A program made the position numbers and the translations under genes. Source: Macrostomum lignano (taxonomy: Eukaryota). From it: a DNA stretch of 64,000 bases. The DNA lies in NCBI GenBank assembly GCA_002269645.1, contig NIVC01001109.1, forward strand, positions 1 to 64,000. Direction: 5' to 3'. The notes beneath the pieces were generated by a model. That model worked only from the letters and a program-made list of their open reading frames with translations, was not told the origin of the DNA and searched no databases. This document shows positions 2,470 to 50,100 of the stretch, piece by piece. The stretch's first letter is position 1, and every line of letters begins with the position of its first letter.

Positions 2470-3860
2470 CTGATCAATTAGGTTGATTGATTGATCAATT
2501 GGGTTGATTGATTGATCAATTAGGTTGATTGATTGATCAATTGGGTTGATTGATTGATCAATTAGGTTGATTGATTGATCAATTGGGTTGATTGATTGAT
2601 CAATTAGGTTGATTGATTGATCAATTGGGTTGATTGATTGATCAATTAGGTTGATTGATTGATCAATTGTGTTGATTGATTGATCAATTGGGTTGATTGA
2701 TTGATCAATTGGGTTGATTGATTGATCAATTGGGTTGATTGATTGATCAATTGGGTTGATTGATTGATCAATTAGGTTGATTGATTGATCAATTGGGTTG
2801 ATTGATTGATCAATTAGGTTGATTGATTGATCAATTGGGTTGATTGATTGATCAATTAGGTTGATTGATTGATCAATTGTGTTGATTGATTGATCAATTG
2901 GTTGATTGATTGATCAATTGGGTTGATTGATTGATCAATTAGGTTGATTGATTGATCAATTGGGTTGATTGATTGATCAATTAGGTTGATTGATTGATCA
3001 ATTGGGTTGATTGATTGATCAATTAGGTTGATTGATTGATCAATTAGGTTGATTGATTGATCAATTAGGTTGATTGATTGATCAATTGGGTTGATTGATT
3101 GATCAATTAGGTTGATTGATTGATCAATTGGGTTGATTGATTGATCAATTAGGTTGATTGATTGATCAATTGGGTTGATTGATTGATCAATTAGGTTGAT
3201 TGATTGATCAATTGGGTTGATTGATTGATCAATTAGGTTGATTGATTGATCAATTGTGTTGATTGATTGATCAATTGGTTGATTGATTGATCAATTGGGT
3301 TGATTGATTGATCAATTAGGTTGATTGATTGATCAATTGGGTTGATTGATTGATCAATTAGGTTGATTGATTGATCAATTGGGTTGATTGATTGATCAAT
3401 TAGGTTGATTGATTGATCAATTAGGTTGATTGATTGATCAATTGTGTTGATTGATTGATCAATTGGGTTGATTGATTGATCAATTGGGTTGATTGATTGA
3501 TCAATTAGGTTGATTGATTGATCAATTGGGTTGATTGATTGATCAATTAGGTTGATTGATTGATCAATTGGGTTGATTGATTGATCAATTAGGTTGATTG
3601 ATTGATCAATTGTGTTGATTGATTGATCAATTAGGTTGATTGATTGATCAATTAGGTTGATTGATTGATCAATTGTGTTGATTGATTGATCAATTGGGTT
3701 GATTGATTGATCAATTGGGTCGGTTGATTTATCAATTGTGTTGATTTATTTATTGATTGGTTAGTTGATTGATTGATAAATTGGTTTGTTGATTGATTGA
3801 ACAATTGGTTGGTTGATTCACTGATAAACACGTTAGTTTTGATTGATTGATAAATTGGTT
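2470..3860 (+). repeat. Satellite array, 21-bp unit GATCAATT(G/A)GGTTGATTGATT, decaying at the right end
   Basis: Direct reading. Confidence 0.95.
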
Positions 3861-4099: not shown

Positions 4100-4420
4100 A
4101 ATCAATCAATCAACCCAATTGATCAATCAATCAACCCAATTGATCAATCAATCAACCCAATTGATCAATCAATCAACACAATTGATCAATCAATCAACAC
4201 AATTGATCAATCAATCAACACAATTGACCAATCAACCCAATTGATCAATCAATCAACCCAATTGATCAATCAATCAACCCAATTGATCAATCAATCAACC
4301 CAATTGATCAATCAATCAACCCAATTGATCAATCAATCAACCCAATTGATCAATCAAGTAACCAATCAATTAATCGGTCAACCAACCAATTGATCGGTAA
4401 ATCAAACCAGCTAACCAACC
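4100..4420 (-). repeat. Inverted copy of the 21-bp satellite (AATCAATCAACCCAATTGATC)
   Basis: Unit is the exact reverse complement of the 2470-3860 unit. Confidence 0.95.
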
Positions 4421-4434
4421 ATTCAACCAATCAC

Positions 4435-5328
4435 TCAATGCCCGGTGGTCGAGTTCGCCCCGCTCTGATGGTGCGTCTTCTGGCATCTTCGCCGGCTGAT
4501 CTGCCCGCCGCCCGCTGGGTCGGCCCTCCATTCCGACTCGTCTCCGCTGCCGCCTCTTCCGCCGTCTCCTCCGCCGCCGACGCCACCGCCGCCTCCGCCG
4601 GCGTGTCCCTGATGCTCTGAAGCCGGCTTCTTCGTTTGAACCTCCTTGACAACGCAGTGATACTCGGGCGGACAGGTGCACTTGAACTCCACGCTGGATG
4701 GCGAATTCTCGCTGGCACGACGTTTCACAACGCAAACGTCATCGTCGGCATCGCGACTCGTCGAGTCGAGGCCAGCTGCAGCGGTTCCTTTACTGTCGGC
4801 GGTTGCCACCGAGCAGACAGGCAGGTGGCAGTGGAAGTCGTAGCGCCAGTCGGCGCCGTTCTCGGCCGGCCGCCAGGACCTCAGCTGGAACTGGGCGTCC
4901 GGGCAGTTGCAGCGGTGCTGCAGCAGCCGGGGACTCCAGGTGGACATCGGGCTGGCAAAGACCGCCGCCGGTTTCTGGTCGGCGAGGCTGCACCTGGCTC
5001 GCTTGGGCATCGGGCTGCACTTGACGAACTGCACTCGCATGTTGGGGTCCTCCCAGTGCTGCCAGTAGAAGCTGCGGTCGGACATCGCGGCGAGAGTGGC
5101 CGGAATGTCCGACTCAGCTGACGGTAGGGCGCAGTTCACGCAGCCGTTGCAGTAGCGGCCCTGATCCACTATTCTGTCCGGGAAGTGCAGCACAGCGTTG
5201 CAAACTGACTCGTTGCTGGGACAGTCTGGCAATTCGGACTTGCCTGACTGGCCGCTGGTCAGGGCCGCCAACAGTGTGAGGGCTGCCAGACTGGTCAGGA
5301 CTGCGGCAAAGTGCTGCTTAGACACCAT
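4435..5328 (-). CDS. Secreted 16-cysteine protein, Argos/giant-lens-like (three-module fold), intronless, 297 aa
   Basis: N-terminal hydrophobic signal peptide. 16 Cys whose order matches Drosophila Argos as recalled: LPDC/LPVC, VKCSPMPKRARC/KLCQPVHKLPVC, HRCNCP...WRYDFHC/VHCRCP...YRYLFAC, FKCTCPPEYHC/SLCQCPKGHRC. Confidence 0.75.
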   Translation of the reverse strand: MVSKQHFAAVLTSLAALTLLAALTSGQSGKSELPDCPSNESVCNAVLHFPDRIVDQGRYCNGCVNCALPSAESDIPATLAAMSDRSFYWQHWEDPNMRVQFVKCSPMPKRARCSLADQKPAAVFASPMSTWSPRLLQHRCNCPDAQFQLRSWRPAENGADWRYDFHCHLPVCSVATADSKGTAAAGLDSTSRDADDDVCVVKRRASENSPSSVEFKCTCPPEYHCVVKEVQTKKPASEHQGHAGGGGGGVGGGGDGGRGGSGDESEWRADPAGGGQISRRRCQKTHHQSGANSTTGH

Positions 5329-7982: not shown

Positions 7983-9115
7983 TGATAATCGTCAATCCTG
8001 ACTCATTAATTGTCAATCCTGACTCACTAATCGTCAATCCTGACTCACTAATTGTCAATCCTGACTCACTAATCGTCAATCCTGACTCATTAATCGTCAA
8101 TCCTGACTCACTAATTGTCAATCCTGACTCACTAATCGTCAATCCTGACTCACTAATCGTCAATCCTGACTCACTAATCGTTAATCCTGACTCATTAATC
8201 GTCAATCCTGACTCATTAATCGTCAATCCTGACTCACTAATTGTAAATCCTGACTCATTAATCGTCAATCCTGACTCATTAATCGTCACTCCTGACTCAC
8301 TAATCGTCAATCCTGACTCACTAATTGTCAATCCTGATTCATTAATCGTCAATCCTGACTGACTAATCGTCAATCCTGACTCACTAATCGTCAATCCTGA
8401 CTCACTAATTGTAAATCCTGACTCATTAATCGTCAATCCTGACTCATTAATCGTCAATCCTGACTCATTAATCGTCAATCCTGACTCATTAATCGTCAAT
8501 CCTGACTCACTAATCGTCAATCCTGACTCACTAATTGTCAATCCTGACTCACTAATCGTCAATCCTGACTCACTAATCGTCAATCCTGACTCACTAATCG
8601 TCAATCCTGACTCACTAATTGTAAATCCTGACTCATTAATCGTCAATCCTGACTCATTAATCGTCAATCCTGACTCACTAATCGTCAATCCTGACTCACT
8701 AATTGTCAATCCTGACTCATTAATCGTCAAACCTGACTCACTAATCGTCAATCCTGACTCACTAATCGTCAATCCTGACTCATTAATCGTCAATCCTGAC
8801 TCACTAATCGTCAATCCTGACTCACTAATCGTCAATCCTGACTCACTAATCGTCAATCCTGACTCATTAATCGTCAATCCTGACTCACTAATCGTCAATC
8901 CTGACTCACTAATCGTCAATCCTGACTCACTAATCGTCAATCCTGACTCACTAATCGTCAATCCTGACTCATTAATCGTCAATCCTGACTCACTAATCGT
9001 CAATCCTGACTCACTAATCGTCAATCCTGACTCACTAATCGTCAATCCTGACTCACTAATCGTCAATCCTGACTCACTAATCGTCAATCCTGACTCACTA
9101 ATCGTCAATCCTGAC
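7983..9115. repeat. Minisatellite, 21-bp unit AATCGTCAATCCTGACTCA(C/T)T
   Basis: Direct reading; source of the spurious (ISESGLT)n ORF. Confidence 0.95.
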
Positions 9116-9213
9116 ACACTAAGCAGAAAAATCACTAATCTCAAGGCAGCCTCTTACCTAGGATCGTTAGGAAGACCCTGAAAGCTCTGTTGCCAGCTAC
9201 ACCTGGGATTGCA

Positions 9214-9762: not shown

Positions 9763-12700
9763 ATGCCAGTCCAAGATCTTGTCCGCTACCGAGACTCTGG
9801 CGAACTGTCCGACCTCACGGTCCGACTTGCCGCTGACGGCGTCAAATCTGAGTGGAAGCTGCACCGGTTCCCGCTCTTCATCAAATCTGACCGATTCCGC
9901 GAACTCCTGGCCGATTCCAGTGTGTCGGAGCTCGAACTCGAATCGGACTTTCCCGGCGGGGCCGACTGCTTCAACTTGATTGCCGATTTCTGCTACAACA
10001 AACGAATCGACATCTCGCCGGACAATGTCGTCCAATTGCATTGCGCGGCCGAACGGCTGGCAATGCGCGGCCGAGGCAACCTGGCCGACCTGACCGACCG
10101 GTACCTCAGCGAGCTGCTTGATTCGGCCAAGGTTGGCCAATCGGCCGGCCCCATTGTCGACCTGCTGACCAGCTGCGGCTCCGTCGGTCGGCCAACTGAC
10201 GAAACGAAACTCCCAGAGAGGTGTCTCGCCGCGCTGCTGGACATCTGGCATCGGGCAGAGGCTTCGGCGGCTGCCGCTGCCGCGCTCAGCTCTGATAGTG
10301 ACGAGCACTTCTACCGGCACGATCACCACTACCGCGTCTTCTCTTCTCCGTACTCCAGCAGACAGCAGCAGCAGCAGCAGCGCGACACTGAGAATCATCT
10401 GCTGAGCCTGCCGTTGCCTCGATTCCTTCAACTGATCCAAGCTGTCTGCCCGTCAGAATCGTCTTCAGCCGCGGCTGCCGCTACTACAGAGGACGAGTTG
10501 AAAGCCGAAACGAACGCCCATCTGCGTCGACGACCGCTGGCTGAGCTGGCCGCCCGCTACCTGGATCAGGCATTCAGCCGGCACCTGAACCCGCCGCAGC
10601 AGGCGCCAACGCCACCGGAGCGCGAGGCCGACGCGGAAAAAGATGATCACAAAGACCAGGAAGAGGACCACGACGACCGAGTGGATAAACAAGCCGACGA
10701 AAAATCCAGTGAACAGTTAACCAGAGAATCCGGCGTCGAAGTACTCGACAGGGTGATTCTCGCCCTGCCAGCCGACACGCCGCTGTCCGAGTCGATCAAT
10801 GCCGATTGGATTCGACGAGCGCTTCGCGTTAGCGAGACGGCCAGCCCGGAGTGTCGCGCCAAACTGCTGCAACTTGCGGGCGGCGCGCTGCACCGCTTCA
10901 CCCAGGACGAACTCAGAGACACGCCGGCCCCTGTACTGTGCGAGATTGTGGAGAACACTGTGAAAAATGACGGCGTTGTGCCCGAAGTCCTCTCGTGCGT
11001 GATTGACTGTCACCTGCTGGATCTGGCCCGGGCTGGGGGGCTTCCTGTGGCCGACTTTGTCAAACTGGCAGCCAGCATGTCGCCAGACTATCGGACCAGC
11101 CACGACACTCTGTACGAGGCGGCCGAGGCTCTGCTCTCTGGTGAGGCAGTCTGCTTGTGAAGGATTGGTTTGTGAAGGATTGGTTTGTGAAGGATTGGTT
11201 TGTGAAGGATTGGTTTGTGAAGGATTGGTTTGTGAAGGATTGGTTTGTGAAGGATTGGTTTGTGAAGGATTGGTTTGTGAAGGATTGGTTTGTGAAGGAT
11301 TGGTTTGTGAAGGATTGGTTTGTGAAGGATTGGTTTGTGAAGGATTGGTTTGTGAAGGATTGGTTTGTGAAGGATTGGTTTGTAAAGGATTGGTTTGTGA
11401 ATGATTGGTTTGTGAAGGATTGGTTTGTAAAGGATTGGTTTGTGAATGATTGGTTTGTGAAGGATTGGTTTGTGAAGGATTGGTTTGTAAAGGATTGGTT
11501 TGTGAAGGATTGGTTTGTAAAGGATTGGTTTGTGAAGGATTGGTTTGTAAAGGATTGGTTTGTAAAGGATTGGTTTGTAAAGGATTGGTTTGTGAATGAT
11601 TGGTGTGTGAATGATTGGTTTGTGAAGGATTGGTTTGTAAAGGATTGGTTTGTGAATGACTGACTGCTAAAGACGTTTCCAAGGATTATTCGAATTCGTC
11701 AATAATCCCTATGCTGTTAATCTCTGAATACATACTGTGATCCCCCAGCTGATCCGTTGCCGCCCGAGTCAGAGCGTCAGCAAGTATTCGATGCCCTGGA
11801 TCTGAACAGATGCAGCGAAGCCATTCTACAGCGGGCCCTGGACAAGGGACTGGTGCCAGCCCGTCTTGTCTGCCAAGCAGCCATTGATGTGGCCAAAAGG
11901 CTCCGGTATCAGCTTGAAGAATTGGAGAAAATAAAATTGGTAAGCCGTCTATTAAACTCTCAACTTCGCTTCTCGGGAAGCGGCGCTGAGCTGTCCTGCT
12001 CACAATTTTATACACCGTGGTCACCGTGGGGTGAGGTCACCGTGGGATGAGATCACCGTGGGCTGAGGTCACCGTGGGGTGAGGGCACCGTGGAATGAGG
12101 TCACCGTGGGATGAGGTCACCGTGGGGTGAGGTCACCGTGGGATGAGGGCACCGTGGGCTGAGATCACCGTGGGCTGAGGTCACCGTGGGGTGAGGGCAC
12201 CGTGGGGTGAGGGCACCGTGGGCTGAGATCACCGTGGGCTGAGGTCACCGTGGGATGAGATCACCGTGGGGTGAGGTCACCGTGGGATGAGGTCACCGTG
12301 GGGTGAGGGCACCGTGAAATGACCTGAATCACGTCTCCTACCGAGGAGACCTCAGGTATATATTTTGGTCATTCCAATAAACAGCTACGCTTGAAAAACC
12401 GTCTTAATGCCACACCACAAAATTGGTGTTTTTTTAATGAAACTGTCATAAAATATTCCTACTCAATAAGGAAAGCAACTGCAGTTATCGGAACGCCCGA
12501 GGGCGTCAGCTATCGGGGTCTGTCTTGGCTGGAAGTCGGCGCTATCATCCCGAACTGTCGGCCGTGAGTTTCCGGCCGGCACTGCAATCAACGCAGCGTC
12601 ATCAGTACGAGCAGTTCGAGAACTATCTGTCTTCGATTGGCTCTGGAGGAGCTGTTGGTACCACTACTTACAGCGCTCTATATGCTAGTAGTAAGTTAAA

Positions 12701-13777
12701 AATTTAATAAAGCATTTTACATCTAGGTTGATAGACTACTGCATTAGTAGCATTAGACGCTTCTATTGTTCTCCCAATGATTCCAAGTGCTGGCGCCCCT
12801 GGTGCTGGCGCCCCTGGTGCTGGCGCCCCTGGTGCTGGCGCCCCTGGTGCTGGCGCCCCTGGTGCTGGCGCCCCTGGTGCTGGCGCCCCTGGTGCTGGCG
12901 CCCCTGGTGCTGGCGCCCCTGGTGCTGGCGCCCCTGGTGCTAAAGCCCCTGGTGCTAAAGCCCCTGGTGCTGGCGCCCCTGGTGCTAAAGCCCCTGGTGC
13001 TGGCGCCCCTGGTGCTGGCGCCCCTGGTGCTGGCGCCCCTGGTGCTGGCGCCCCTGGTGCTGGCGCCCCTGGTGCTGGCGCCCCTGGTGCTGGCGCCCCT
13101 GGTGCTGGCGCCCCTGGTGCTGGCGCCCCTGGTGCTGGCGCCCCTGGTGCTGGCGCCCCTGGTGCTAAAGCCCCTGGTGCTAAAGCCCCTGGTGCTAAAG
13201 CCCCTGGTGCTGGCGCCCCTGGTGCTGGCGCCCCTGGTGCTGGCGCCCCTGGTGCTGGCGCCCCTGGTGCTGGCGCCCCTGGTGCTGGCGCCCCTGGTGC
13301 TGGCGCCCCTGGTGCTGGCGCCCCTGGTGCTAAAGCCCCTGGTGCTAAAGCCCCTGGTGCTAAAGCCCCTGGTGCTAAAGCCCCTGGTGCTAAAGCCCCT
13401 GGTGCTGGCGCCCCTGGTGCTGGCGCCCCTGGTGCTGGCGCCCCTGGTGCTGGCGCCCCTGGTGCTAAAGCCCCTGGTGCTAAAGCCCCTGTTGCTAAAG
13501 ACCCTGGTGTAAGGTAGATTGTCAGATAGAGTATAGAGTCTTCTGCACATGAACAAGACTCCGAAGTAAAAATTCAATCCCGCTAATCCCAGGCCGGCGA
13601 GACACCGACAACGAATCGATGTCGCATTTCGAGGAGAATCTACGCGCCGAACTGGGCAAAATATCGGCCAATTATGACAGCTACCTGGCCGAGAGGGCCA
13701 CCGGCGCAGGTGGCACCAGGTCTACTGAGTTCAGAGCCTCGTTCCGGAGCTCTGCGTCCCGTGGGAGACGCTGGTGA
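9763..13777 (+). CDS. BTB/POZ + NPH3-domain protein (NPH3/RPT2-like), exons 9763-11140, 11749-11939, 12471-12690, 13593-13777; 657 aa
   Basis: NRL-type BTB motifs KLHRFPL, DFPGGADCFNLIADFCY, NVVQLHCAAERLAM, NLADLTDRYL. NPH3-type C-terminal motifs DFVKLAASMSPDYRTSHDTLYEA and ERQQVFDALDLNRCSEAIL...VPARLVCQ. Three GT-AG introns with consistent phases 1/0/1 give a 1974-nt open frame. Confidence 0.85.
11156..11660. repeat. Intron-1 minisatellite, 15-bp unit TGTGAAGGATTGGTT
   Basis: Direct reading. Confidence 0.95.
12015..12320. repeat. Intron-2 minisatellite, 16-bp unit GTCACCGTGGG(G/A/C)TGAG
   Basis: Direct reading. Confidence 0.95.
12785..13505. repeat. Intron-3 minisatellite, 15-bp unit GCT(GGC/AAA)GCCCCTGGT with two variant units
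   Basis: Direct reading. Confidence 0.95.
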
Positions 13778-16276: not shown

Positions 16277-17020
16277 TCAGGGCAGAGAAAACTTCACCCA
16301 GTCGGCGCTCGTCTCGATCTCCTCCTCCACCTGAGTGTCGGTAAACAGCAGAAGACGGCAAGTTCTCAGCTTGCTGTTGTACAGCACGTGTCTGCAGTTG
16401 CCAGCACGCATGCCGGCCGCAACGCAGTGCATTGAGTTCTTCACCTGCAGCAGGTCAGTGTGGCAGTACTCCGAGCTCTCATGGAAGAAGCTGCGCTTGA
16501 ACTCCGTCAGCTGCCAATTGGCATGAGTTGGTGGTGGCAGCGGGTCGACTGTCGGACTCGGAGTCCACTCGCACGCCAGTCCGAACTTCTCCGAGCACTT
16601 TCGGTTGGCGATTTTGCCAAAGACAAGCGTGATGCAGTTCTCTACCGCACCGAAATTTGGATCATTATTGTTCCATATGGTGTCGTTCAAAGGCAGGATG
16701 CCGTTTCCGTTAATGCGCTGCCAGCCCGACTTGCTGGAGCCTCTCTCATCGGCCAGGTCGGTCACTCCGAGCCACACAATGCAGAAACAGTCAAGAATCG
16801 GCATGCCACTTAGCAGCAGAATCGACTCGAACGAGTTGACGAGCTCACCTCCGATTGACGCGCACTTCTGATAAGCCGAGCACCAGGTGTGCTTCTTCGA
16901 TGTGCTCACGAACAGGCATTTGTCACCTTCCAGGCTAAACGGATCAGGGCACGTCTGCGCCCAGACTGACACCAGCTGATTAAGGAATATTAACGCCAGA
17001 ATGAGTGTCGTCATATTCAT
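16277..17020 (-). CDS. Secreted C-type lectin domain protein with a C-terminal PAN/apple-like domain, copy 1 (247 aa, intronless)
   Basis: Signal peptide. CTLD motifs CPDPF...KCLF, TWCSAYQKCASIGGEL, VWLGVTD, W...DPN...ENC. C-terminal C-x3-C...CRHVLY...CRL pattern is PAN-like. Confidence 0.85.
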   Translation of the reverse strand: MNMTTLILALIFLNQLVSVWAQTCPDPFSLEGDKCLFVSTSKKHTWCSAYQKCASIGGELVNSFESILLLSGMPILDCFCIVWLGVTDLADERGSSKSGWQRINGNGILPLNDTIWNNNDPNFGAVENCITLVFGKIANRKCSEKFGLACEWTPSPTVDPLPPPTHANWQLTEFKRSFFHESSEYCHTDLLQVKNSMHCVAAGMRAGNCRHVLYNSKLRTCRLLLFTDTQVEEEIETSADWVKFSLP

Positions 17021-21096: not shown

Positions 21097-24000
21097 CTAT
21101 GGACGGAGGGTTGGCGCCGCCCAGGGAGGTCCCCCAGTGTCGCCAGCAGCTATAGTGCTCTCTGGAAAGGAGAGTTCAGCCCTGCGGGTGGCCCGAAGGT
21201 AGCGCATGAGCTGGTTAAAGTTTTCGGGTTTGCACGCTTCAGTAATAGATGTGTGTGGCCCGAGGTAAGTGAGTCTGGCCCGCGTGAAGGCGGGACAGAT
21301 GCTGACGAAATGCTCAGCGGTTTCGTCACCTGAGTTGCAGAAACTACAGGTGGCGTTGGTGGCGTTGCCCTGAAGGTACTGGTGCCTGGCGAAGCAGCCG
21401 TGACCAGAGAGGGCCATGGTGGCAGCCCGGATGTCTCTGCGCGAGAGGCGCAAGAGGAGCTTCCGGAGCTGGTGAGAGGGCTGAGGGACAGCGCCTCTAG
21501 ATTGCCTGCAGTTCGTGCGGTTCGCCCAAGTCGAGCGGTGCTGAGTCCTGATCCACGCTTTGATGCGCGAGTTGATGACACAGCCAGGAATCGGGACAAG
21601 AGGTTCGGGGCCGAGAGAGGAGCCGGAGGCACCAACTTTTGCAAGGGTGTCAGCCAACTCATTTCCTCGGATCCCCACATGCCCCGGAACCCACTTAAGG
21701 GTAATTTTGTTGGCGGAACCCAACACGTTGAGGAGTTTGATACAGTCAAGGACTGTAGCAGAGTTGGTGCTGCAGCCACTGATGGCGTGCAAGGCAGCTT
21801 GGCTGTCCGAATGGAAAATGATGTTCTTACCAGTAACGCCAGTGGCGAGAAGCTCTGCAGTGCAGGAGCTGATGGCCAGAACTTCATTTTGGAAAACACT
21901 GGAGTTGACCCCAGTGTATTGAGCGTGGGTAGCGATGACCCTCCCGTTCAGAAAGATTCCAACACCAAAGCCGGTGTTGGCTGACTGCTTAGAACCATCG
22001 GTGTAGCAATGAAGCTCACCAAGGTTCCATTGGTCATTGATGTTATCGCGCGAGTCGATAGCTACGGAGTAGCGTTGTCTCAGGTTGAGCGTTGAGGCAA
22101 TGCCATCGGTGAAGACGCGATTGGCCTGACACTCGTTGAGAAAGTTGAGGCACAGGTCGCTATGCGGGACAAGGTTCCGCTTAGCAGGTGCTCTCATGTA
22201 AATGAATTTGACGCCGGCATCAATTAGACGCCGCGTCGTTCTAGCCGCCTCACCCCTGACGAAGAGGTCAAGAGGCGGTAGATTAAGGAAGGCCCCCATG
22301 CCAGCAAAGGGCGTGGACCTGGTGGCGTTGCAGATGAGCCTACACGCTCTGCCTTGGATCGTGTTGAGCAGATCTGCATGGCTTTTGACCTGGGTAGCGC
22401 TAACCCAGACAACAGAGGCGTACGTAATGGCAGGTCTAACTACGGAAGTATAGATCCACCAAAGCCGCTTTGGGGATAGACCCCAAGAAGTGCCAAGTGC
22501 TCGTCGGAGCTGGGCCAGGATGGCTGAGGCACGCTTGGCTTTTGCTTTCACGTGGAAGGACCAGTTGAGCCGGTGGTCAAGTGTGACCCCGAGACATCTG
22601 GTCTGGTGCGCGAAGGCAATATCTCTGCCGTAGAGCTGCAGAGGACGTATGTTCCAGCGTAGTCTGCTGGTAAACATAATGGCAACGGTTTTGGGCTCAG
22701 AGAGTTCCAGACCTTTGTCATTGGCCCAGGATTCTGCTTTGCGGATAAAGCTCTGCATCAGATCCCTGAGCGTGCTGGGAGACGGTCCTGCCACAATGGC
22801 CGTGACGTCATCAGCATACCCGACTTTGAAGACGGGGTCGGGTCGGGAGTCACTCAGAAGAGCGTCCATGACCAGGTTCCAGAGCGTCGGGGTGAGGACT
22901 CCGCCTTGGGGTCCACCCTTACAGACTCTGGTGGAGGCAGTTTGCCCAAGAAGTTGGCAGTGACCGTACGGTTGGAGATCATGTACATGATCCACCGTAT
23001 GAGGGTAGCATGAGCTTTGCGATTTTGAAGGGCCCTCTGAAACGCTTCAAAGATAACGTTGTCGAAGGCGCCAACAATGTCAAGAAAGAGAGCCAGGGCG
23101 TAACCGTCACCCAGTACCGCCCGTTCAATCTTCTCGACAATCGCATGCAGGGCGCTGTCAGTCGACCTCCCGGTACGGAAGGCGTGCTGATTATTGCTGA
23201 GGGGCATCGCTGTCAGCTCGCAGGACAGCAGCCGCCAGAGAATAAGCCTCTCAGTGAGCTTAAGCATTGCTGACGTTAAGCTAATAGGCCGGAAGGCCTT
23301 GACGCTTTGGTAGTCACCCTTCCCAGGTTTGGGAATAAAGACTACCCGAGCTTCAGTCCAGCATTTGGGAACGTATCCCAGCTGGATAGAGGCCCGCATA
23401 AGATTGCGGGTGAGTCTCAGGAACGAGGGTATCTTGGCTGCTTCACGAAGAAGAACAGGGTAGATACCATCAGGTCCAGGAGATTTGAAGGGTTTGAAGG
23501 TTCTGACCGCACGAGCGATTAGGTCTTCAGTGACAATGCCCGCCGCTAGGGTGGCTCCATCCATCGAATGGTTGGGCTCCGGTCTAGCAGTAGGTACCCT
23601 CGGGAAGAATGTGCTGAGCATATGCTGAAGCACTTCTTCAGGGTCTTTAGTAAGAGAGCCATCATCTTTTTTGATCACGGCTAATTTAGACATTTTGTCC
23701 ATTGTAAGGGCCTTGACAAGCCTAGAAGTAGGTCTGTCTTGATCCAATTCATTGCAGAATTGGCGCCACTTACATTCCTTGGCCTTGCGCACTTCAGATT
23801 TGAAATTGCGGGACGCTTGCCGGAAAAGCTCCATGTCCTCCGGGTTTCCGGTCTTCATGGCACGGCGATGAAGGCTTTTGGCCTTCCGCCTGAGTTTCCC
23901 CAGCTCCGGGTTCCACCACGGCGCCGAGGTCTTGCCTTTGTAGGCGCGAGCAGGACAAGCCGCTACGTAGGCTGCAATAATGCAACCTGTCAGCGTCTCA

Positions 24001-24851
24001 GCCATTGACAGGTATCAATCCTCAATCCTCGCAGGATCCACATCCTCGCAGGTCTCAATCGGACATAAGTCCGTGAGTTCCTGCAGGTGCAGATCAAGGG
24101 CAGCCTTGTAGGCCGCCCAATCAGTGTTGCGGATATTGCGCCTCCAAGTGATCGGAGACTGGGTTTTAGTGTCCGCGATGTTAAAGGCGATAAAGCAGTG
24201 GTCAGACAGGGAGGGCTCCTCAGACCAGACTCTCCACTCCTCAACTCTGTCAAAGAGTCTTGAGGTTACGAGTGTGGCGTCGAGGACCTCGGTCCATCTG
24301 CCATTATTAAAGGTAGGAGTGCTGCCGCGGTTGCAGAGCATGAGGTTTGTGTTAGAGATGAGGGCCAGAAGCTCCTCTCCTCTAGTATTGGTGTCTTTGC
24401 TGCCCCATTGCTTGTGGTCGCCCCCTAAGCACAGCTCAGCGTTCTGGGACTCGCAGTACTGCGCGAGGCGCAGTAAACTCTCAGGAGCAGGGTCTCTGTC
24501 GCCTGGGATATAAACCGAGGCAACAAGATGCGTACGCGGAGAGAAATGATTAGATTGGATGACGCAAAGGTCTCCATCAGAGAGATCAGTCCTCAGCCAA
24601 ACCTGGAGATGGCTAGCAGCGAGGACAGCCGCTCTGGGGCGGCTGTTCCCCGGGCCACACACATAAAAATCAGAGTAGCCAGAGGGAATGTTGGGCAACT
24701 TACTGTTGCGCATCCAGGGTTCCTGGATCAGGATGAGGCCTGGCCTGTACAGCTCAGCAATCTTCATCAGATTTACTGACGCAGATACGCAATGCTGTAA
24801 ATTTATTTGCAGACAGAATGTCGCTCCTTTGGCAGCGTGGAGCTTAGTCAT
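21097..24851 (-). pseudogene. LINE ORF2: APE endonuclease (24015-24851), RT (22854-24005 and 21097-22995), RNase H, C-terminal CCHC; split by two frameshifts
   Basis: LQINLQH, IQEPW, SDHCFI (APE); FRPISLTS, FLDIVGAFDN, PQGGVLTPTLWNL, YADD (RT); YTDGSK, HSDSQAAL, WVPGHVGIRGNELAD (RNase H); CSFC...ETAEHFVSIC. Confidence 0.9.
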
Positions 24852-26274
24852 ACTGTATTAAATGCAATGTCTGGCTAGAGCCCCAGGGCCATCGAGGAGA
24901 CTTGGACAACAGATCGTCCTCGTCCCAGACCGCTGGGGCTTGACTGGGAGATGGGAGTTGGTCGACGTCCATGGCCTCCTCACCCCCACCGGCCCCCCCA
25001 GCAGAGTCCTCAGGCTCCGATGACAGGATGGAGGAAGCTTCCTCATCTGCATCTTTACCTTCAGACCCCGCCAGGGTGGCCGAGGAGAGCTCGGATTCCG
25101 AAGACCCGGCCTCGTCCTCAACTCCTTCTCCGACTGGCAGGTTTGGTTCCCGGGGCTTGGCCGGAGCTGTTACCGCGGTCGCCGAACTGCTGCTAGCAGA
25201 GGGGCGAGACGCAGCTTTGGCTTTGGGATCGGCTTGCGCCTTTCCTTGGGCCTTAGACTGCGCCCCGCTCTTGCCGGAGATGCCGGGGTTGGCAGTAGCC
25301 TTCCCTTTGGGAGGCTTTCCTCGGCGCATCTTGAGCTTGAGGGCACCCAGCTGGAAAGAGGATCCATTAGGGTACCGACTCGCCCAAGTGCTGGAAAGGC
25401 CGAGGACAATTGAGTTGCCCGTCTCCCCCCTGCGGACTTTGCGGTGATACACCAGTCCACTAGCAGGGAGGTCGGGGTTCAGACGCAGTAGGACCCGGCG
25501 GATAACGTCTGGTCCAGCTGCGGTGCTCTTAGCAGGGACGAAAACCACATAGGGTATCGTCTTTGGACGCTGGCCCTCGCGAAGAAAAAGAGCTCCGCCA
25601 AGGTCAGCATCCAAGGAGACCGTCGGTAGCCGCTGGAGCAGCTGCCGAGCGTCCTCCTCGCTGCTAGGAGCAATAAGAACGAATGTGCTTCGCAGCACCA
25701 TCCGCTCAATGCCGATGGAGATTCCCTCCTCGACAGTCAGCTCAATCAGATAGGAGTCAACAGCACTCCACACTTTTTGAAGCTGATCAGTGGTCCAGTC
25801 CTGGTCGCGACCTTGGATGATCACTCCCGGGATTTTGGCCTTGGCCTTCGCCGCAAAGGTAGCTCCCGAAGGAACCTCCTTGTTCGCAGTGGCCATTTGT
25901 TGCACCGTGGTTTCGGCCTCAGCAGCCGCGGCAGCATCTCCAAAGAGCGCCGCCGCTGAACTACTGGAGCTTCCACCGGCCGGCCCGCCTGGTTGCCTTG
26001 GGACTCCAGTCGCTTCAGCATCTATGGTGGACGCCGCCGCTTTGGCCCCCGCAGCTCCCTTCTTGGCCTGCCTTTTGGCGCGTTGTTTAGCGCGTTTGCG
26101 CTCAAGCCGAGCCCGCTGAGCTTCATCGGATCTGCCAGATTTGGCCGGTCCTTTAGGCTCAGAGCTCGCGGTTCCCTTAGATCCACCAGCAGAGCTGGCA
26201 GGTCTTTGGGTATTTTGAGTTTGGTAGCTCTGGTCGGATCTGCCAGCAGAGCCAGCCGGTCCTTCCTTTGCCAC
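24844..26274 (-). CDS. LINE ORF1 (gag-like, low-complexity flanks, ~55-bp internal repeats at the N-terminus)
   Basis: 476-aa ORF immediately upstream of and overlapping ORF2; start codon uncertain. Confidence 0.75.
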   Translation of the reverse strand: MAKEGPAGSAGRSDQSYQTQNTQRPASSAGGSKGTASSEPKGPAKSGRSDEAQRARLERKRAKQRAKRQAKKGAAGAKAAASTIDAEATGVPRQPGGPAGGSSSSSAAALFGDAAAAAEAETTVQQMATANKEVPSGATFAAKAKAKIPGVIIQGRDQDWTTDQLQKVWSAVDSYLIELTVEEGISIGIERMVLRSTFVLIAPSSEEDARQLLQRLPTVSLDADLGGALFLREGQRPKTIPYVVFVPAKSTAAGPDVIRRVLLRLNPDLPASGLVYHRKVRRGETGNSIVLGLSSTWASRYPNGSSFQLGALKLKMRRGKPPKGKATANPGISGKSGAQSKAQGKAQADPKAKAASRPSASSSSATAVTAPAKPREPNLPVGEGVEDEAGSSESELSSATLAGSEGKDADEEASSILSSEPEDSAGGAGGGEEAMDVDQLPSPSQAPAVWDEDDLLSKSPRWPWGSSQTLHLIQYD

Positions 26275-38390: not shown

Positions 38391-39920
38391 CTAAATGAAA
38401 AAACTAAGTCGGACGCCATCCTTTTCCAGTACAGCGGTAGGCTTGAGGTCGTTTGGGTCGCATGATTGCCTCACGGCTGGGATAGCCTTCGGTCTTTGAT
38501 TGATGTTGCTAGCCTCTGAAGTCTCAATGACGACCATACGCTTTGAGGAGGTGGCCTCAGTCTCCGACACAGTTCCGTACAGAGCACTCGTAAGCGAATT
38601 TGAAATTTGCTGTTTCCTCTTCTCAGAAATCCTTTTCACATAGCGGTCAACTGCAGCGTCAGTGCGATGGCCTGGTAAAGTGGGAGGGGGCAAGGTACTG
38701 AACTGTTATTTAATGGGCGCAGGTGGAACACAAGCACTTAGATGATTAACATAACAGGAGACAAGTTACCTGTAACAGTCTTGATTTCTCTCACACTGTG
38801 CCCAGCTTCTGCCAAGTAAGGTTACAACACTGGCACGAACGCAGTGGTTCGTGTACTCCAACTGAAGACCTGCACGCCGCGAGATGTTCTTCATCATGTC
38901 ATTGAGCGTGTTCTTCCCCAAGACCTGCTTGGCCGAGTACCAGACATCAGAATCAGCACGAACCTTTATGGGCTTTGGAAAAAGTGCCTCCACACCAGGT
39001 GGGAATTTGGCGAGATACAGTTGCACTGCCTCAACTGGACACTTTGAGCCACCAGTACTGAACATCCTCGTATGCTTTCCGGTTGAACATTGCTGAATAC
39101 TTGCCGCAGTCAAAGTCTTCTCAGGACCCGTTTGAACCATGTCGATGCACTCTACACCTTCGTGCTCGCAGAACCGCACTGAGGATACCTTCAGGTCCCT
39201 TATCCATTCTCGACCTCGGAAGCCAAAGTGGTAGACAATGTTAAAAAACACTTCGTCTTGCAGCCGCTCCGGGTCCCTTCGGTTGAAGTACGCACTTAGC
39301 AGGGACAAGTCGGAATCGGTGATGGCCTTGAATCCTCGTTGGTCTCCAACGGTTCGCTCCCTCAACTGGCAACTCAAACGCAGGACGCACGAGTAGGTTT
39401 CATTGCTCAGGCGAAATTGCTCATTCCCAATGACGTCAGTCGCACGTGTCTCAATCATGTACCTGTGCACGCTGGCTCTGAAGCCCCGGATCGCATCCGG
39501 TGCATACGTCTTTGTCCCCACGGCAGGATTTCCTTTCAAACTTACATACCAGAGGCGCAAATAGCTGTCGACATAACGCAGTGGCATGCGCTCAATGTCC
39601 TCAGGCAGTTTCTTCTCGCGGAGGAACTTCTTAAGTCGTTCAATGTGATTCCGAGTAGTAGCCAATGTCGAAGGCGACTTTGAGGATGCCTCGGTGTCCT
39701 TAATGTTTTGAAGTTCTTTCGCATCCAAGTCTCGTAGCGAACACTCCGGATCAATAGCGGAATTCAGGAATTCTTCGATCTCCTCGTGGTCCAGGACCGG
39801 CAGCCCAGTGAATTGATCTACCGTTGATTCTGCATGCATGGACAGTCGAGATATAAACTGCAGCTCAGAATTAGCCAGGCCACTAATATCGCCTGTTGCT
39901 ATCTTACTGAAATTGATCAT
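38391..39920 (-). mobile_element. Crypton-type (DUF3504/CryptonA-like) tyrosine recombinase gene; exons 38770-39920 and 38391-38671; one 1-nt frameshift near 38815
   Basis: Catalytic set in order: HFGFRGRE (R), YTNHCVRAS (HxxR), TG|HRT (H), VDRY (Y); also CPVEAVQLY and WYSAKQVLGKNTLNDMMK. A 98-nt GT-AG intron (38672-38769) joins VTG to HRTD in phase 1. Confidence 0.85.
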
Positions 39921-44132: not shown

Positions 44133-47100
44133 TGTTTGGGAGGTAGATTATTAACTTATTGATTTTCTTTCCATTGCATGATTTAATGTACTGCTTTATT
44201 CAGTTCGCTATGTACGCTGGTCTAGCCCAGGCCCATTTCACCCACCCCCACCGCTGGCTGATATTCTGGCTGACTGCAAATAAATATATCATCGAGAGGG
44301 CTTGCGAGCCCTGTGTACGGTTTACGTTTTTCGTTTTGTTAGCGTCTCGCTTGAGCCTCAGCTCCAAAATAGTTTGGCGGACCATCGGTCTTTTCATTTC
44401 TACAGTACATTTTGGTAGCAGAGCGTGGTTGGACAAGCCTAACTTACCACTGACGTGGCAAGCAATAGAAGCCTACTGTGAAACGAAGGACCAGGATGGA
44501 TAGTGACGACGCCAATGAGCAACAGCAGCAGGACGCCCAAGACGATGTCGGCGCGCTGCGTTTAGAGAAGCTGCGCTTCGAGAAATCCCGAAAAAAGGCA
44601 GCGTTCACTCGTTGCAAGAACAAGCTGTCTTGGCTGCTACAGACGCGCGCCTCTGACGACGAAGTGCAAGCTGCCTGCGACGCTCTGTCTGACCTTCAGG
44701 ACCTGGTCAGCGCCATCCAGGAAGAACTGCACCAAGGCTACGCCGACGCCAAGGACAACGAGAGGCGACAGCGCCTACTAGAAGAGATGGAGGAGACTGA
44801 GCGCGACTACCAAACTGCCATTCAGCGCGTCGAAAGTTCCAGAAACTGGGGATTGCAGCGCGCCCAAGAAGCCCCTCCTGTCGCGAGTTCAAGCGGTGAG
44901 AACGCTGCGGGTGACCAAGAAGAAGCAGCTGGTGAGTTAGACAAACTTTCTGGCAGTGCTGCGTCCAGCAAAGGATCCAACCCGAAGGAGCTTTCAAAGG
45001 ATTTGTGGAAGATGCTGAAGCGTGTTGAAATCCCAACGTTTAGTGGAGAAAAGCAGAAGTATGAAAACTGGAAGGCAGCCTTTGTTGCGTGCATCGACAG
45101 CGCCCCTGCAACACCAGAATTCAAGTTGCTGCAGCTTAGGCAGTACCTTAGCAGTGAAGCTTTGAAGGTTATAGAACATCTAGGACACTCCGCTGCTGCA
45201 TATGAGGCTGCAAAAGAGAGACTAGAGAGAGAATTTGGTGGACAGCGTAGGCAACTTGCTCTGCACTTGGAAGAGCTGGACAGCTTCCCGATCGTGCGAA
45301 ATGGAAACGCCAAGGATCTGAAAAGCTTTGCTAATCTACTGGATGTGGCTGTCGTTAACCTTGAGGATGCGGGTAAAGAGGCAGAGCTTCAAGATGGGAT
45401 GTTGTATGTGAAGCTGCAGAAAAAGTTGCCTGAGCAGATGGTTACCAGCTACCGGAGGTGGATCTTTGAGCAGCGGAGGCGGGAGAGTGTTAGAAATCTG
45501 AGAGTTTGGGTGCTGCAAGAAGCAGAGTTTCAGACTGAAGCGTCAGAGATTGTGCAGGGCGTTGCCACCATGCAGCAGGAGCGTCAAAAGCGAGAGCAGC
45601 GACCAAAGACTTTCGTTACTACGGACAGTGACAAGAAGGTACAGCATTGTTTGTCAAGGTGATCACGAGCTGTGGTCCTGCAGTGAGTTCAAGGAGCTTC
45701 CGGTGGAAAAACGCTGGGACGCGACGCAGAGCTCGAAGTGTTGTTTCCGGTGCTTGGGCCAAGGACATCTTGGCAGCCAATGTCGGCGCGGTCGTCGGTG
45801 CGGCATCAACAGCTGCACAAAGTTTCATCATCGCCTGCTTCATGCAGAAAAAGTGTTGGCCAAGTCTGGTGAAGCGAAGCAGACTGCATCCAAGGACGCT
45901 AAATCCGCTTCCAGTTCAGGAAAGACTGGACCGGTGACGCTTCTGTCAGCTGGTGAAACGGCAATCTCGTTACGAACGGTGCCTGTAGTCTTACGGAACG
46001 GGTCCCGGAAACTGAAGGTGAACGCCTTGCTCGACGATGCCAGTACCAGGAGCTACGTCAACATCGGGATAGCAGAAGCGCTTGGAGTGCATGGAGCGCT
46101 CGAAAAGGTGAAAGTCGGAGTCATCAATGGCCAAACAGAGACCTTCATGACAGCCCCAGTCTGCTTTAGCTTGGAAATTCTGGATGGTCAGACCAGCTCA
46201 ATGATCGTCGCCTTCACCGCCGATCACGTGACCGGGTCCCTCAAAGGCGTCGACTGGCACGAAGAAGCGCAGCAGTGGCCTCATCTGAGAAATGTGCCGT
46301 TTCCGAAGCTGTGTGAGCCTGCAGTAGTGGACTTGCTGATTGGTGCTGATCACCCGGATCTTCACGTGTCCCTCAAGGAAATCGTCGGACAGCCGCTGGA
46401 GCCAAAGGCGCGCCTGACTCCCCTGGGTTGGACGTGCATCGGTCGCACAGAGCAGGACAATTCTGAGATGCAGAACGCCCATTTTGCTGCCACTTTCTTC
46501 AGCTGCGATTCCGAATCTGGTCAGGTGGCTAAGATCCTGCGGCAGTTTTGGGAGATCGAGAACGTCTCAGAAGGTGCCAATCGAAGTCCGCTGACCGCCG
46601 ATGAAGAGAGAGCCGTCCAGCAAGCCAAGTCGTCGCTGAAGTACATGAAGGGCCGTTACTAGATCGGGATTCCATGGAAAAAGGATCGGCTGGCTCCAGC
46701 AGGCACTTTCTCAATGGCCTTCAAGCGACTAAAGAACACCGAACAGCGGCTGATTAAGGATGTGCACGTCTGCAAGCAGTATCAGGAGATCCTTGAAAAG
46801 TATGAACAGCAAGGTTATATCCGAAAAGTGTCGCAAGCTGAGACTGAAGGCCGCTGTTTCCTGCCGCACTTCCCAGTGCTGCGGCCAGACAAGGCTACAA
46901 CAAAAGTGCGGATAGTCTTTGATGCATCGGCTGCCAGATTGAACGACCAGATCCTCCAGGGCCCAAAACTGCAGAGGGATTTGGTTGACGTGCTGCTTCG
47001 GTTCCGCCGACACCCGATTGCGATCGCATGCGACGTAGCGGAAATGTATCTCCAGATCGAGATGGACCCGAAGGACAGGCCGCTGCACAGTTTCCTTTGG

Positions 47101-50100
47101 CGGGACGCCGATCCTTCAAAGCAACCGGATGTCTACGAGTTCAACAGAGTGGTGTTCGGCGTCACCAGCTCTCCTTTCTTGGCACAGTTCGTTACCCGCT
47201 GCCATGCTGAAAAGTTAAAAGGTGAGCTTCCAGAGGCGGCCGAGACAGTACTGCACTCTACCTATATGGATGACAGCCTGGACTCCGCGCCCACCGAGGC
47301 AGCCGCGTGCAGGCTGTACGATCAGCTCAGCGAGCTCTGGAGGCGCGCCGGCATGCACGCGCGCAAGTGGGTCTCGAACTCGAGAGCTGTGCTCGATAGA
47401 ATCCCACCTGAAGACCGTGCAGCAGAAGTTACCTTGGACAGCAAAGAACTACCAAGCACCAAGACACTGGGTGTCACGTGGCAGAGTGAGCAGGACGAAT
47501 TTACCTTTAAAGATGAAAACGAGTCGCGTCAGGTGACCACAAAAAGAGGTCTGCTGAAGAAGCTAGCGAGCGTTTTTGATCCACTTGGACTGATCTCTCC
47601 ATTTGTCGTGCAGGCGAAGATTTTGATGCAGGAGCTTTGGCAGACAGGTCTTGATTGGGATGAACCGCTGAATGCAGAACTTGGTGCGAGAGTGAGCGCC
47701 TGGTGCATTGACCTGAAGCATTTAAGCGAGATTCGGCTTTCCAGGGCGCTTGAAGGAGAAAATTCCCTGTCGGGTAGTCTGCACGTGTTCGTTGACGCAT
47801 CCGAGAAAGCTTACGGAGCTGTATGCTACTGGAGAAGTGAAACGGCAACTGACGGTGAACGTTCCGTTCGACTTATCATCTCGAAGACTCGAATAGCTCC
47901 AATCACAACCATGAGTACACCGAGGTTGGAGCTGATGGCAGCAGTTCTGGGAGTCCAACTCGCAAGCAAAGTCCTCAGTTTCTCTTAGAAGAGGCAGAGA
48001 ATTGGCCAAAGAACAAAGTGCAGGTTCCTGAGCAGGTGGAAGAGAGACGCAGATGCGAGAATCAGTCGCCGGCCGGTAAGAGCCAGAGAACGTATGTCAC
48101 CGATGTGCTAGAGCGCAATCATCGACTGGAGCCAGAGCGCTTCTCCAGCTGGATCAGAGCTGTCCGTGTTCACGCTTGGGTGGCCAGGTTCGCTAACAAC
48201 TGCCGTTTGATGAAGGAGCACCGAGATACTGGCGAGCTATCACCAGCAAAGATTGAAGCAGCTGAATCGAAGATCATCCAGAGAGCCCAGCAAGAAACGT
48301 TTGCGGAAGAGATCGCTTGTCTGCGAGCAGGAAAGCAGTTGCCGGGACGCAGTGTGATTTCTAACTTGAACCCGAAGCTCGACGTCAACGACCTGCTTCG
48401 CGCTGATGGGAGACTAAAGTTCGCCGATGTGCTACCGTTTAGCGCTCGATTTCCCATCATTCTGCCAAGATCACACCGCGTGACGGAGCTCATCGTGAAG
48501 CATCACCACGAAAGTGTCCAACATCTAGGCACAAACCAAACTCTGGTGGCACTGTCAAACCGATTTTGGATCGTCTCGGCCAGAGAAGCCATCAAGTCTT
48601 GGGAAGCAAAGTGCGCCGAATGTCGCCGACGGAAAGCCAGACCAGCCAGCCAGATTATGGCCCCCTTGCCCGCTTGCCGATTCAAGGAGCCGCTTCGTGC
48701 CTTCGCTCGGGTCGCTGTCGACTTTGCCGGTCCATTCATCACCAAGCAGGGCCGTGGCAAGGCTCGGCAGAAAAGGTACCTGGCATTGTTCACCTGCTTG
48801 GCAACGCGAGCTGTACATCTGGAAGTGGCATTCGCATGGATACCGATTCCTTCCTACGGACTCTACAGCGGATGATCAGTCGACGAGGCCAACCGATCGA
48901 GCTGTTCTCGGACAACGGCACGAACTTCGTCGGTGCGGCGCGCGAGCTTCGAGAACTAGTCGACGTCTTGGGTACCCAGAAGCTTCAACAGCGAACGGCT
49001 TCTCAGCAGTTGCGATGGCATTTCAACCCGCCCGCTGCGCCGCACTTCGGTGGGGTGCACGAAATCATGATCAAAGCAGCGAAGAAGGCAATCTGGGCAA
49101 TTCTGAAGGAGGCGGACGTCACGGATGAGGAGCTGCTAAGCGCGTTTGCTGGAGCGGAGGCACTTCTGAATTCAAGGCCGTTGACGTACCAGACGGCGCA
49201 TCCGAGTGATGATGTGCCGCTGACGCCGAATCACTTCCTCATCGGGCAAGTCGGCGGGAAGTTTGCACCGGAGGTCGACGCTGCCATCGCCCGCAGTCCT
49301 TCAAGAAGATGGCGTCACGTCCAGCAGCTGGTGTCGCAGATCTGGCGCCGGTGGTTGCGCGAGTGGCTGCCGGGACTCGCACCGCGGAGCAAGTGGCGCC
49401 GCGAGCTGCCTGACCTACAACCTGGAGACGTGGCGCTGCTGGTGAGCCCCGACTCGCCTCGGGGTCACTGGCCGCTGGCTCGCGTGCTGGACGTCATGCG
49501 CGGTCCTGACGGTCACGTGAGAGTCGCCTCAATCAGAGTCGGTGATCGCACAATGACGAGACCAATAACAAAGTCTGCAGGTTAGTTTGCGAACCTTTGC
49601 TAGAGAATTAGACTTTGTCAGGTTTTGCAAATTTTCTGATGAGTTTTTCAATTTTCCTGTTTTTTGCATTGTTCGTTTTGTCTTTTTTCTCTTCCGTGCT
49701 AATAGGATTCACCTTGTTTTGCAGTCATAACCCAATTTTCGTTTTCAGTGTTCAACGCGATTAACATTCATTATTTAGTTATTTATTTTCTTGCGTGAAT
49801 TTTTGCTGAACAGCAGTCGTTACGGTTTATTGAATTTGTCGGCAAGTTTGTCTTTTGCGCTTTTTTGAGTTTTTTACGAGCGATGTTGGCATTCTTTGAG
49901 TTCTACTTATTGCTGATTTTGTTCGCTTATAAGTACTACAGTTTTTGCACTAGTTACGACCTTTTGATAGTCCAATGCTTACAATTATTGTTTCAGTTTT
50001 TGTTTCAGTTGCGTTTGGTGGCGGAAGTCTGCGTTCGTAATCAATTTTGAATTTTTCTTGATAGCTGACGTACTTTTGCAAAATTTTCGATTGTCATCAA

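Follow-up and report, generated by a model that had tools for sequence, protein, structure and literature searches.

Does a flatworm make a secreted antagonist of the Argos type? The question is raised by a short gene at positions 4435–5328, on the minus strand, of a 64,000-nucleotide stretch of the Macrostomum lignano genome (contig NIVC01001109.1, positions 1 to 64,000; hereafter the window). An original prediction, made from the DNA letters alone, had described the product as an Argos-like protein in a non-arthropod genome. Argos is the textbook example of growth-factor inhibition by sequestration of the ligand rather than by blockade of the receptor, here the epidermal growth factor (EGF) receptor (EGFR), and was long seen as an arthropod speciality. 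The analysis described below indicates that this is, taken as a whole, best explained as a functional gene encoding a secreted remote homologue of Argos, a member of a spiralian clade of the two-finger toxin (2FTX) fold that would act as an extracellular ligand binder. We give this reading a probability of about 80%.

Argos-like proteins outside arthropods were already published in 2025. Khilji et al. (2025, Protein Sci, PMC12514838) solved the structure of a cone-snail toxin, found it similar to domains 1 and 2 (D1–D2) of Argos, named the 2FTX fold and sorted ∼1800 protostome proteins into 12 clusters, with the Argos cluster as their cluster C. Most of these proteins are secreted, three-domain and Argos-like, share 12–26% identity with Argos, and have been speculated to modulate EGFR; none was found in deuterostomes (PMC12514838). 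Figure 6 of that paper lists Capitella teleta R7U7Q8 as Argos-like, and other examples are Aplysia XP_005110430.1 and Caenorhabditis elegans M6.4. The novelty that the original prediction implied for an Argos-like protein outside arthropods was thus overstated. Flatworms appear in the main text of PMC12514838 solely as a phylum with EGFR pathways, and no flatworm Argos-like member is named there; a literature search turned up no publication in which Argos or an Argos-like protein is connected with Macrostomum or another flatworm. What is added here is a macrostomid branch from the flatworms, set apart by its expanded hinge and loop, in a lineage that is tractable for RNA interference (RNAi), transgenesis and regeneration work.

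An intact gene for a secreted protein with 16 cysteines

The ORF (open reading frame) listing and its translation show an intact single-exon frame of 297 residues plus a stop at 4435–5328. It starts with ATG, an in-frame stop lies 13 codons upstream, and continuous alignment to the M. lignano protein PAA92404.1 (relative P0001) and to about 20 other relatives marks it as a complete coding sequence. The N-terminus is hydrophobic over residues 6–24 (mean Kyte–Doolittle value 1.8) and is followed by a cleavage-like site between TSG and QSG that aligns with SAG and QKG of P0001. A signal peptide is accordingly predicted at residues 1–26 (MVSKQHFAAVLTSLAALTLLAALTSG; positions 5251–5328, minus strand), a heuristic call based on hydrophobicity, small residues and alignment with relatives. 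The mature part contains all of the cysteines, exactly 16 in number (residues 36, 43, 60, 63, 66, 104, 113, 140, 142, 167, 172, 199, 217, 219, 225, and 282), so that the signal peptide and the cysteine count noted in the original prediction were both recovered. These results confirm a real, intact gene for a secreted protein. The product would have a mass of ∼29 kDa, and its 16 cysteines presumably form eight disulfides that lock three four-stranded β (2FTX) domains.

An AlphaFold2 model was built with a 22-sequence alignment and reached a mean predicted local distance difference test (pLDDT) of 78.3 and a predicted template modelling score (pTM) of 0.76, with 138 residues at a pLDDT of at least 90. 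Its 12 strands fall into three groups of four, in agreement with the three four-stranded β domains of Argos (PMC12514838). All of the following segments are on the minus strand. Domain 1 (residues 33–115, positions 4984–5232) contains Cys 36, 43, 60, 63, 66, 104, and 113, and is defined by the model and by alignment to Argos D1 Cys 29–89; strands are predicted at 41–48, 53–58, 86–90, and 98–103 with a pLDDT mostly of 89–94, lower in the loop of residues 67–86. The motif LPDC (residues 33–36) lies at its start. Domain 2 (residues 116–173, positions 4810–4983) contains Cys 140, 142, 167, and 172 and the motif CNCP...WRYDFHC (140–167), which aligns to HCRCP...YRYLFAC of Argos. Its predicted strands (122–127, 134–138, 147–154, and 160–166; pLDDT 91–97) come with four aromatic residues that are invariant in the family, W131, W152, W161, and Y163.

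A hinge rich in Ala, Ser, and Asp (residues 174–198, positions 4735–4809), expanded and predicted to be disordered (pLDDT 52–55), links domain 2 to domain 3. The first part of domain 3 (residues 199–230, positions 4639–4734; Cys 199, 217, 219, and 225) carries CTCPPEYHC (217–225), is aligned to QPC...SLCQCPKGHRC of Argos, and has predicted strands at 198–204, 212–215, and 223–225 (pLDDT 91–95). A Gly-rich stretch follows between Cys225 and Cys282. Gly makes up 19 of the 56 residues of this last D3 loop, within which a predicted disordered insertion occupies residues 231–266 (positions 4531–4638; pLDDT 38–56); the M. lignano relatives carry one much like it. A 9-bp GC-rich repeat at 4550–4600 lies inside the region coding for the loop. 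Domain 3 is completed by residues 267–286 (positions 4471–4530; pLDDT 90), with a final strand at 276–284 and C282, which aligns with the Cys of the C-terminal GYC of Argos and with its counterpart in nearly all relatives.

A family with one cysteine framework in four phyla

Relatives were sought by an exhaustive phmmer search of the core (residues 27–235) against 1.84 billion representative sequences. It gave 23 matches, 21 of them genuine; the other two (P0013 and P0014) were tandem-repeat artefacts and were excluded. A word-indexed homologue search returned no match with the core and only six with the family profile. The two top relatives are hypothetical M. lignano proteins, PAA92404.1 (E 3.7e-36) and A0A1I8IX76 (E 6.9e-31), and, together with a conserved neighbouring gene, they bear out the assignment of the locus to a non-arthropod genome. 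Identity of the M. lignano relatives to the window protein is 44–46% over phmmer or tblastn high-scoring segment pairs (HSPs) and 37–40% by full BLASTP, by which the window protein and two M. lignano relatives are about equidistant from one another. These closest relatives (PAA92404.1/PAA86780.1, from BOX15_Mlig033031g1 and Mlig007285g1, and A0A1I8IX76), unannotated or hypothetical, share with the window protein a C-x2-C-x2-C motif in module 1, a long hinge, and a Gly-rich D3 loop. The PAA92404.1 gene has one intron, in contrast to the intronless gene of the window.

The remaining relatives are uncharacterised proteins of 180–290 residues with 25–35% identity. They come from molluscs, namely the chiton Liolophura, the cephalopods Octopus and Argonauta, the bivalves Potamilus and Sinanodonta, and the gastropods Haliotis, Pomacea, Bulinus, Biomphalaria, Elysia, and Plakobranchus; from the annelids Capitella and Ridgeia; from the nemertean Lineus; and from metagenome or transcriptome contigs. 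The cysteine framework is the same in all 21. In the numbering of the window protein, W131, W152, W161, Y163, and F215 are the invariant aromatic residues, and W89, H91, V99, and Q100 are nearly invariant. The Capitella relative (P0005; phmmer E 2.6e-8; 24.7% identity and E 1e-14 by BLASTP) is R7U7Q8, the protein already listed as Argos-like. The window protein therefore carries the features by which Argos-like proteins have been described: a secretion signal (by heuristic), three 2FTX domains, the cysteine pattern, 19% identity to Argos, and a published relative. The macrostomid proteins differ from the other spiralian members by their lineage-specific hinge and loop expansions.

Two relatives carry the automatic name 'EGF-like domain-containing', one of them an over-extended gene model discussed below. 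The names seem to rest on a short motif of the CTCPPEYHC type. An EGF-domain identity for the window protein was rejected, the best indication being 8.7 bits to PF23427 (EGF_4; cut-off 27) over 14 residues at that motif.

Profile and fold comparisons identify a remote Argos homologue

The deposited chain 3c9a_A ('Protein giant-lens', 223 residues, exactly 16 Cys) served as the Argos reference. A hidden Markov model (HMM) of the window protein and its relatives, searched against 177,635 distinct Protein Data Bank (PDB) sequences, gave Argos (3c9a_A/3cgu) as its sole match, with an E-value of 1.4e-7 and a span covering residues 29–221 of the 223 in the chain. Profile–profile alignment by hhalign gave a probability of 95.1% (E 3.3e-8) against the Argos chain and of 97.2% (E 3.5e-11, 179 columns, 19% identity) against a profile of 15 arthropod Argos proteins from insects, crustaceans, a millipede, a mite, a spider, and a springtail.

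The one-to-one order of cysteines proposed in the original prediction was reproduced in full by hhalign (16/16) and for 14 of the 16 by hmmalign, which placed them in the same column. The three motifs named there (LPxC, CxCP...YRYxFxC, and CxCPxxxxC) are found as the LPDC, CNCP...WRYDFHC, and CTCPPEYHC described above, and their counterparts in 3c9a_A are LPVC, CRCP...YRYLFAC, and CQCPKGHRC. The two proteins are thus alike in being secreted, in the order of their 16 Cys, in the motifs LPxC, CxCP...RYxFxC, and CxCPxxxxC, and in being built of three four-stranded two-finger β domains. The similarity was compared with that of shuffled sequences. The family HMM scored the real Argos chain at 32.0 bits. 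The highest score was 6.7 bits among 500 full shuffles of the chain and 18.1 bits among 500 others in which the cysteines kept their places; none of the 1000 shuffles reached the real score. Since the shuffles with fixed cysteines stay below the real score, the Argos signal is more than cysteine spacing.

The predicted fold points in the same direction. When the model was compared with 350,542 PDB chains by Foldseek, four matches had an E-value of 1e-3 or better, and all four were Argos chains, with E-values between 4e-6 and 2e-5 and a probability of 1.00. The match that came after them had an E-value of 0.43. Chains of uPAR were non-significant (1ywh at rank 7, E 0.71; 3bt2, E 3.1), and 2FTX/Argos domains have been described as bearing only a general resemblance to the Ly6/uPAR three-finger proteins (PMC12514838). 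By sequence profile, by profile–profile comparison, and by fold, the window protein is a remote homologue of Argos, and the original description of an Argos-like, three-module secreted protein with 16 Cys holds. That description was to be given up if there were no Argos profile match and the fold were unlike that of Argos; what was found is a family profile that matches Argos alone and a fold whose only significant matches are Argos chains.

These results also bear on the view that the frame arose by chance in repeat-rich DNA, or is a pseudogene in decay there, and that its likeness to Argos reflects no more than a Cys-rich composition. Minisatellites do flank the gene, and low-complexity, Gly-rich sequence makes up some of the ORF. 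The frame is nevertheless intact, relatives from four phyla share its 16 Cys and the invariant Trp, Tyr, and Phe residues, an M. lignano relative matches at E 3.7e-36, the neighbouring gene is conserved, the AlphaFold2 model is confident, and shuffles with fixed cysteines never come near the real score. A spurious ORF is effectively excluded.

Departures from arthropod Argos

A number of observations weigh against reading the gene as encoding a remote Argos homologue with an Argos-like mode of action, and they are taken together here and in the two paragraphs that follow. Detection depends on the family. The window protein by itself has no Argos match in Pfam even at E≤10, the trimmed core finds nothing relevant and no Argos among all PDB chains by phmmer, and the best pairwise BLASTP alignment to the deposited Argos chain is non-significant (E 0.31). 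In the Pfam check proposed in the original prediction, Argos was thus not matched by the single sequence; the match to Argos came from the family, by the profile and hhalign results given above. The matches that the full ORF does give by phmmer in the PDB, all of them Gly-rich linkers of engineered fusions, are artefacts of its Gly-rich tail. Global TM-scores (template modelling scores) to Argos are 0.34–0.43 with a root-mean-square deviation of 9–12 Å, low values that may be attributed to hinge differences and to ∼50 disordered residues in the model.

The residues that are fixed in Argos have mostly been lost. Of 35 non-Cys positions that never vary among the 15 arthropod Argos proteins, a single one (Y163) is kept in the window protein, together with 5 of the 23 near-invariant ones. 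If these invariant residues are allowed to stand in for the surface that binds the ligand, no conservation of an Argos-type surface is visible. The spacing of the last two domains is altered as well. The D2–D3 hinge measures 26 residues between cysteines in the window protein and five in 15/15 arthropod Argos, and the last D3 loop 56 residues against 25–28. Argos forms its clamp on the ligand Spitz from D2 and D3 (PMC12514838), so the hinge and loop changes fall exactly at the site of the mechanism.

The record of the other Argos-like proteins is also unfavourable. Argos is the only one of them with a known function, and knock-outs of C. elegans M6.4 have no reported phenotype (PMC12514838). 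The SLPTX11 proteins of centipedes are venom-gland products of ∼20 kDa with eight disulfides, some of them truncated, and some are K+ channel inhibitors.

The geometric changes are confined to macrostomids among the relatives compared. The hinge is 4–15 residues long in non-flatworm relatives and 20–44 in M. lignano relatives; the last D3 loop is 18–32 residues in the former and 78 in M. lignano P0001 and P0024 (P0002, also from M. lignano, was left out of the loop comparison, its final Cys being unaligned). The most frequent lengths in the non-flatworm spiralian relatives, 5–6 for the hinge and 24–26 for the loop, lie near the 5 and 26 of Argos despite only ∼20% identity. In these comparisons the Argos hinge and loop geometry is broken only in the macrostomid proteins. 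Two further differences lie towards the N-terminus. Module 1 reads C-x2-C-x2-C in the window protein and C-x-C-x5-C in Argos, and the long flexible N-terminal and D1 regions of Drosophila Argos are absent.

The window protein lies outside the curated arthropod Argos family (PF11581, gathering threshold 25 bits). The Argos chain scores 227 bits on this profile as a positive control, and none of the relatives reaches the cut-off; the best is P0017 with 20.1 bits, and P0001 has no score. Weak Pfam leanings among the 22 alignment members are divided between DUF5731 (PF19002, cut-off 27.1 bits), favoured by seven (best E 8.3e-6), and Argos, favoured by three. The window protein has no DUF5731 match, and the best of nine relatives scanned singly (P0005, 19.8 bits) falls below that cut-off. 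The SLPTX11/DUF5731 proteins and the window protein nonetheless have in common an Argos-like plan, with eight disulfides in the former and presumably also in the latter.

These data speak to whether the protein could be a true Argos orthologue, that is, a diffusible inhibitor that acts in feedback on the EGFR signalling by which it is induced and that clamps Spitz-type EGF domains with the contact surface of Argos. Such an orthologue would share the 16-Cys framework, the three domains, and the secretion signal, as is the case; Argos is the sole significant PDB match by profile and by fold, and the non-flatworm relatives retain Argos-like hinge and loop lengths. Against this, arthropod Argos proteins as far apart as those of flies, mites, millipedes, and crustaceans are 50–65% identical to Drosophila Argos, and the window protein is ∼19–20% identical to it. 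The near-complete loss of the invariant residues, the expanded hinge and loop of the flatworm proteins, the PF11581 threshold that no relative attains, and the lean towards DUF5731 over Argos all argue the same way. Arthropods moreover carry further Argos-like paralogues besides Argos (PMC12514838), so that one-to-one orthology does not follow. We consider a true orthologue decidedly improbable.

Candidate functions of the Macrostomum protein

The preferred reading, a remote homologue with an extracellular binding function, leads to the following picture. The protein would be part of a clade of spiralian proteins (from molluscs, annelids, nemerteans, and Macrostomum) inside the Argos-like 2FTX group of protostomes. 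It has no membrane anchor and would act as a soluble extracellular binder whose domains may close like a clamp on a small protein ligand. The macrostomid proteins would be a lineage-specific variant of this design, with a long flexible D2–D3 hinge and a Gly-rich insert in the D3 loop. The leading candidate for the ligand would be a member of the EGF family that is kept from EGFR, as with Argos, through an interface that would then have been largely remade.

Sequestration of an EGF ligand is the leading single hypothesis for the window protein, by analogy with Argos, because the only member of the fold with a known physiological role acts in this way and because the three domains, D3 included, have been kept. 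M. lignano has eight EGFRs (Barberan et al., 2016, PMC4914847, in which Argos is not mentioned), and ligands to regulate should therefore exist. The hypothesis is held tentatively, with the odds somewhat against it, because the Argos-invariant surface has been replaced, the hinge and D3 loop have been remodelled, M6.4 has no reported phenotype, and the targets known from elsewhere in the fold are unrelated. The wider proposal that the macrostomid protein and the spiralian clade as a whole are genuine diffusible sinks for EGF ligands, with hinge and loop tuning the range or specificity of ligands, is possible but rather doubtful. Were it correct, EGFR antagonism by ligand sequestration would predate the split between arthropods and spiralians, and regenerating flatworms would possess an extracellular brake on EGFR signalling. 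The statement that Argos-like proteins regulate EGFR outside arthropods is directly testable in Macrostomum, a member of a phylum in which EGFR signalling matters for regeneration.

The replacement of the Argos-invariant residues by another conserved set (W89, H91, V99, Q100, W131, W152, W161, and F215) would also fit an Argos-fold protein with a target other than the EGFR pathway, either a neuro-secreted modulator of channels or receptors or a defensive, toxin-like secretion such as SLPTX11 or the cone-snail 2FTX proteins. One Haliotis relative is automatically named U-scoloptoxin(11)-Ssd2a-like, a name that arises because the centipede SLPTX11 venom proteins, with three 2FTX domains, are themselves Argos-like (PMC12514838). 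The K+ channel inhibitors among those eight-disulfide proteins provide a precedent, and the Aplysia Argos-like transcript peaks in pedal ganglia (PMC12514838). Unlike typical venom families, however, the clade evolves slowly, and its named matches, where examined in the four phyla, fell into a single cluster or a small number of clusters in each species. All three domains have been kept, among them D3, without which Argos does not bind its ligand. We know of no venom apparatus in macrostomids. A target outside the EGFR pathway is conceivable, and on present evidence we rate it only slightly below the sequestration of an EGF ligand, with the odds likewise against it. If the function did prove different, the nearly complete replacement of the Argos-invariant surface on a conserved scaffold would be an example of scaffold reuse.

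Genomic surroundings of the gene

The Argos-like gene stands head-to-head with a gene on the plus strand (9763–11160) whose 465-residue ORF has Pfam matches to BTB and NPH3. The NPH3 match (PF03000, 32.4 bits, cut-off 27) covers only profile positions 183–228. The gene for PAA92404.1 (locus L001, 1109–7367, minus strand) has the same head-to-head BTB+NPH3 neighbour, and the two neighbours are 38–61% identical in three tblastn HSPs, with ∼50% in the longest. Look-ups by exact sequence showed no record of the Argos-like ORF, the BTB–NPH3 ORF, or a lectin-like ORF of this metazoan window (described below), and the locus therefore seems distinct from the indexed M. lignano gene set. NPH3 is regarded as a plant family, which makes an animal BTB–NPH3 protein unexpected.

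Downstream of the Argos-like gene, exons of a haspin kinase were recognised by Pfam on the plus strand at 78–443 and 801–1307. In the UniProt entry A0A1I8IQ47 (P0025, 480 residues, M. lignano), an Argos-like paralogue runs on into a haspin exon read in antisense; this 'EGF-like domain-containing' protein is an over-extended gene model and a database error. An EGF ligand adjoining the Argos-like gene was accordingly rejected as a candidate, the C-terminal extension of A0A1I8IQ47 being the antisense haspin exon. A six-Cys motif of the EGF type was found in no frame of the window.

Just 3′ of the Argos-like gene lie two minisatellite arrays with a period of 21 bp, at 2471–3818 (64 copies) and 4101–4409 (15 copies). 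Their units are reverse complementary, so that the arrays form an inverted pair ∼280 bp apart. Many other minisatellites of 15–21 bp occur in the window, for example at 528–971, 7986–9122, 11155–11656, and 12753–13577, and give rise to long spurious ORFs.

Two single-exon ORFs on the minus strand (16277–17020 and 54395–55132) begin with a signal-like stretch and match the C-type lectin profile weakly (18–21 bits, cut-off 22.6). Both sit in a duplicated segment of 805 bp whose copies lie ∼38 kb apart and are 98.3% identical, an identity that points to recent copying of a gene-sized piece. Mobile elements or fragments occupy four regions, at 21097–26274 (minus strand), 38766–39920 (minus strand), 44478–49585 (plus strand), and 59040–59573 (plus strand). 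Among these four are a long interspersed nuclear element (LINE)-like element with long intact ORFs and reverse transcriptase (RT) and RNase H domains; a BEL/Pao long terminal repeat (LTR) retrotransposon with a gag-like ORF, Peptidase_A17, RT, and further downstream ORFs; a DUF3504/integrase-like ORF; and a carboxylesterase fragment.

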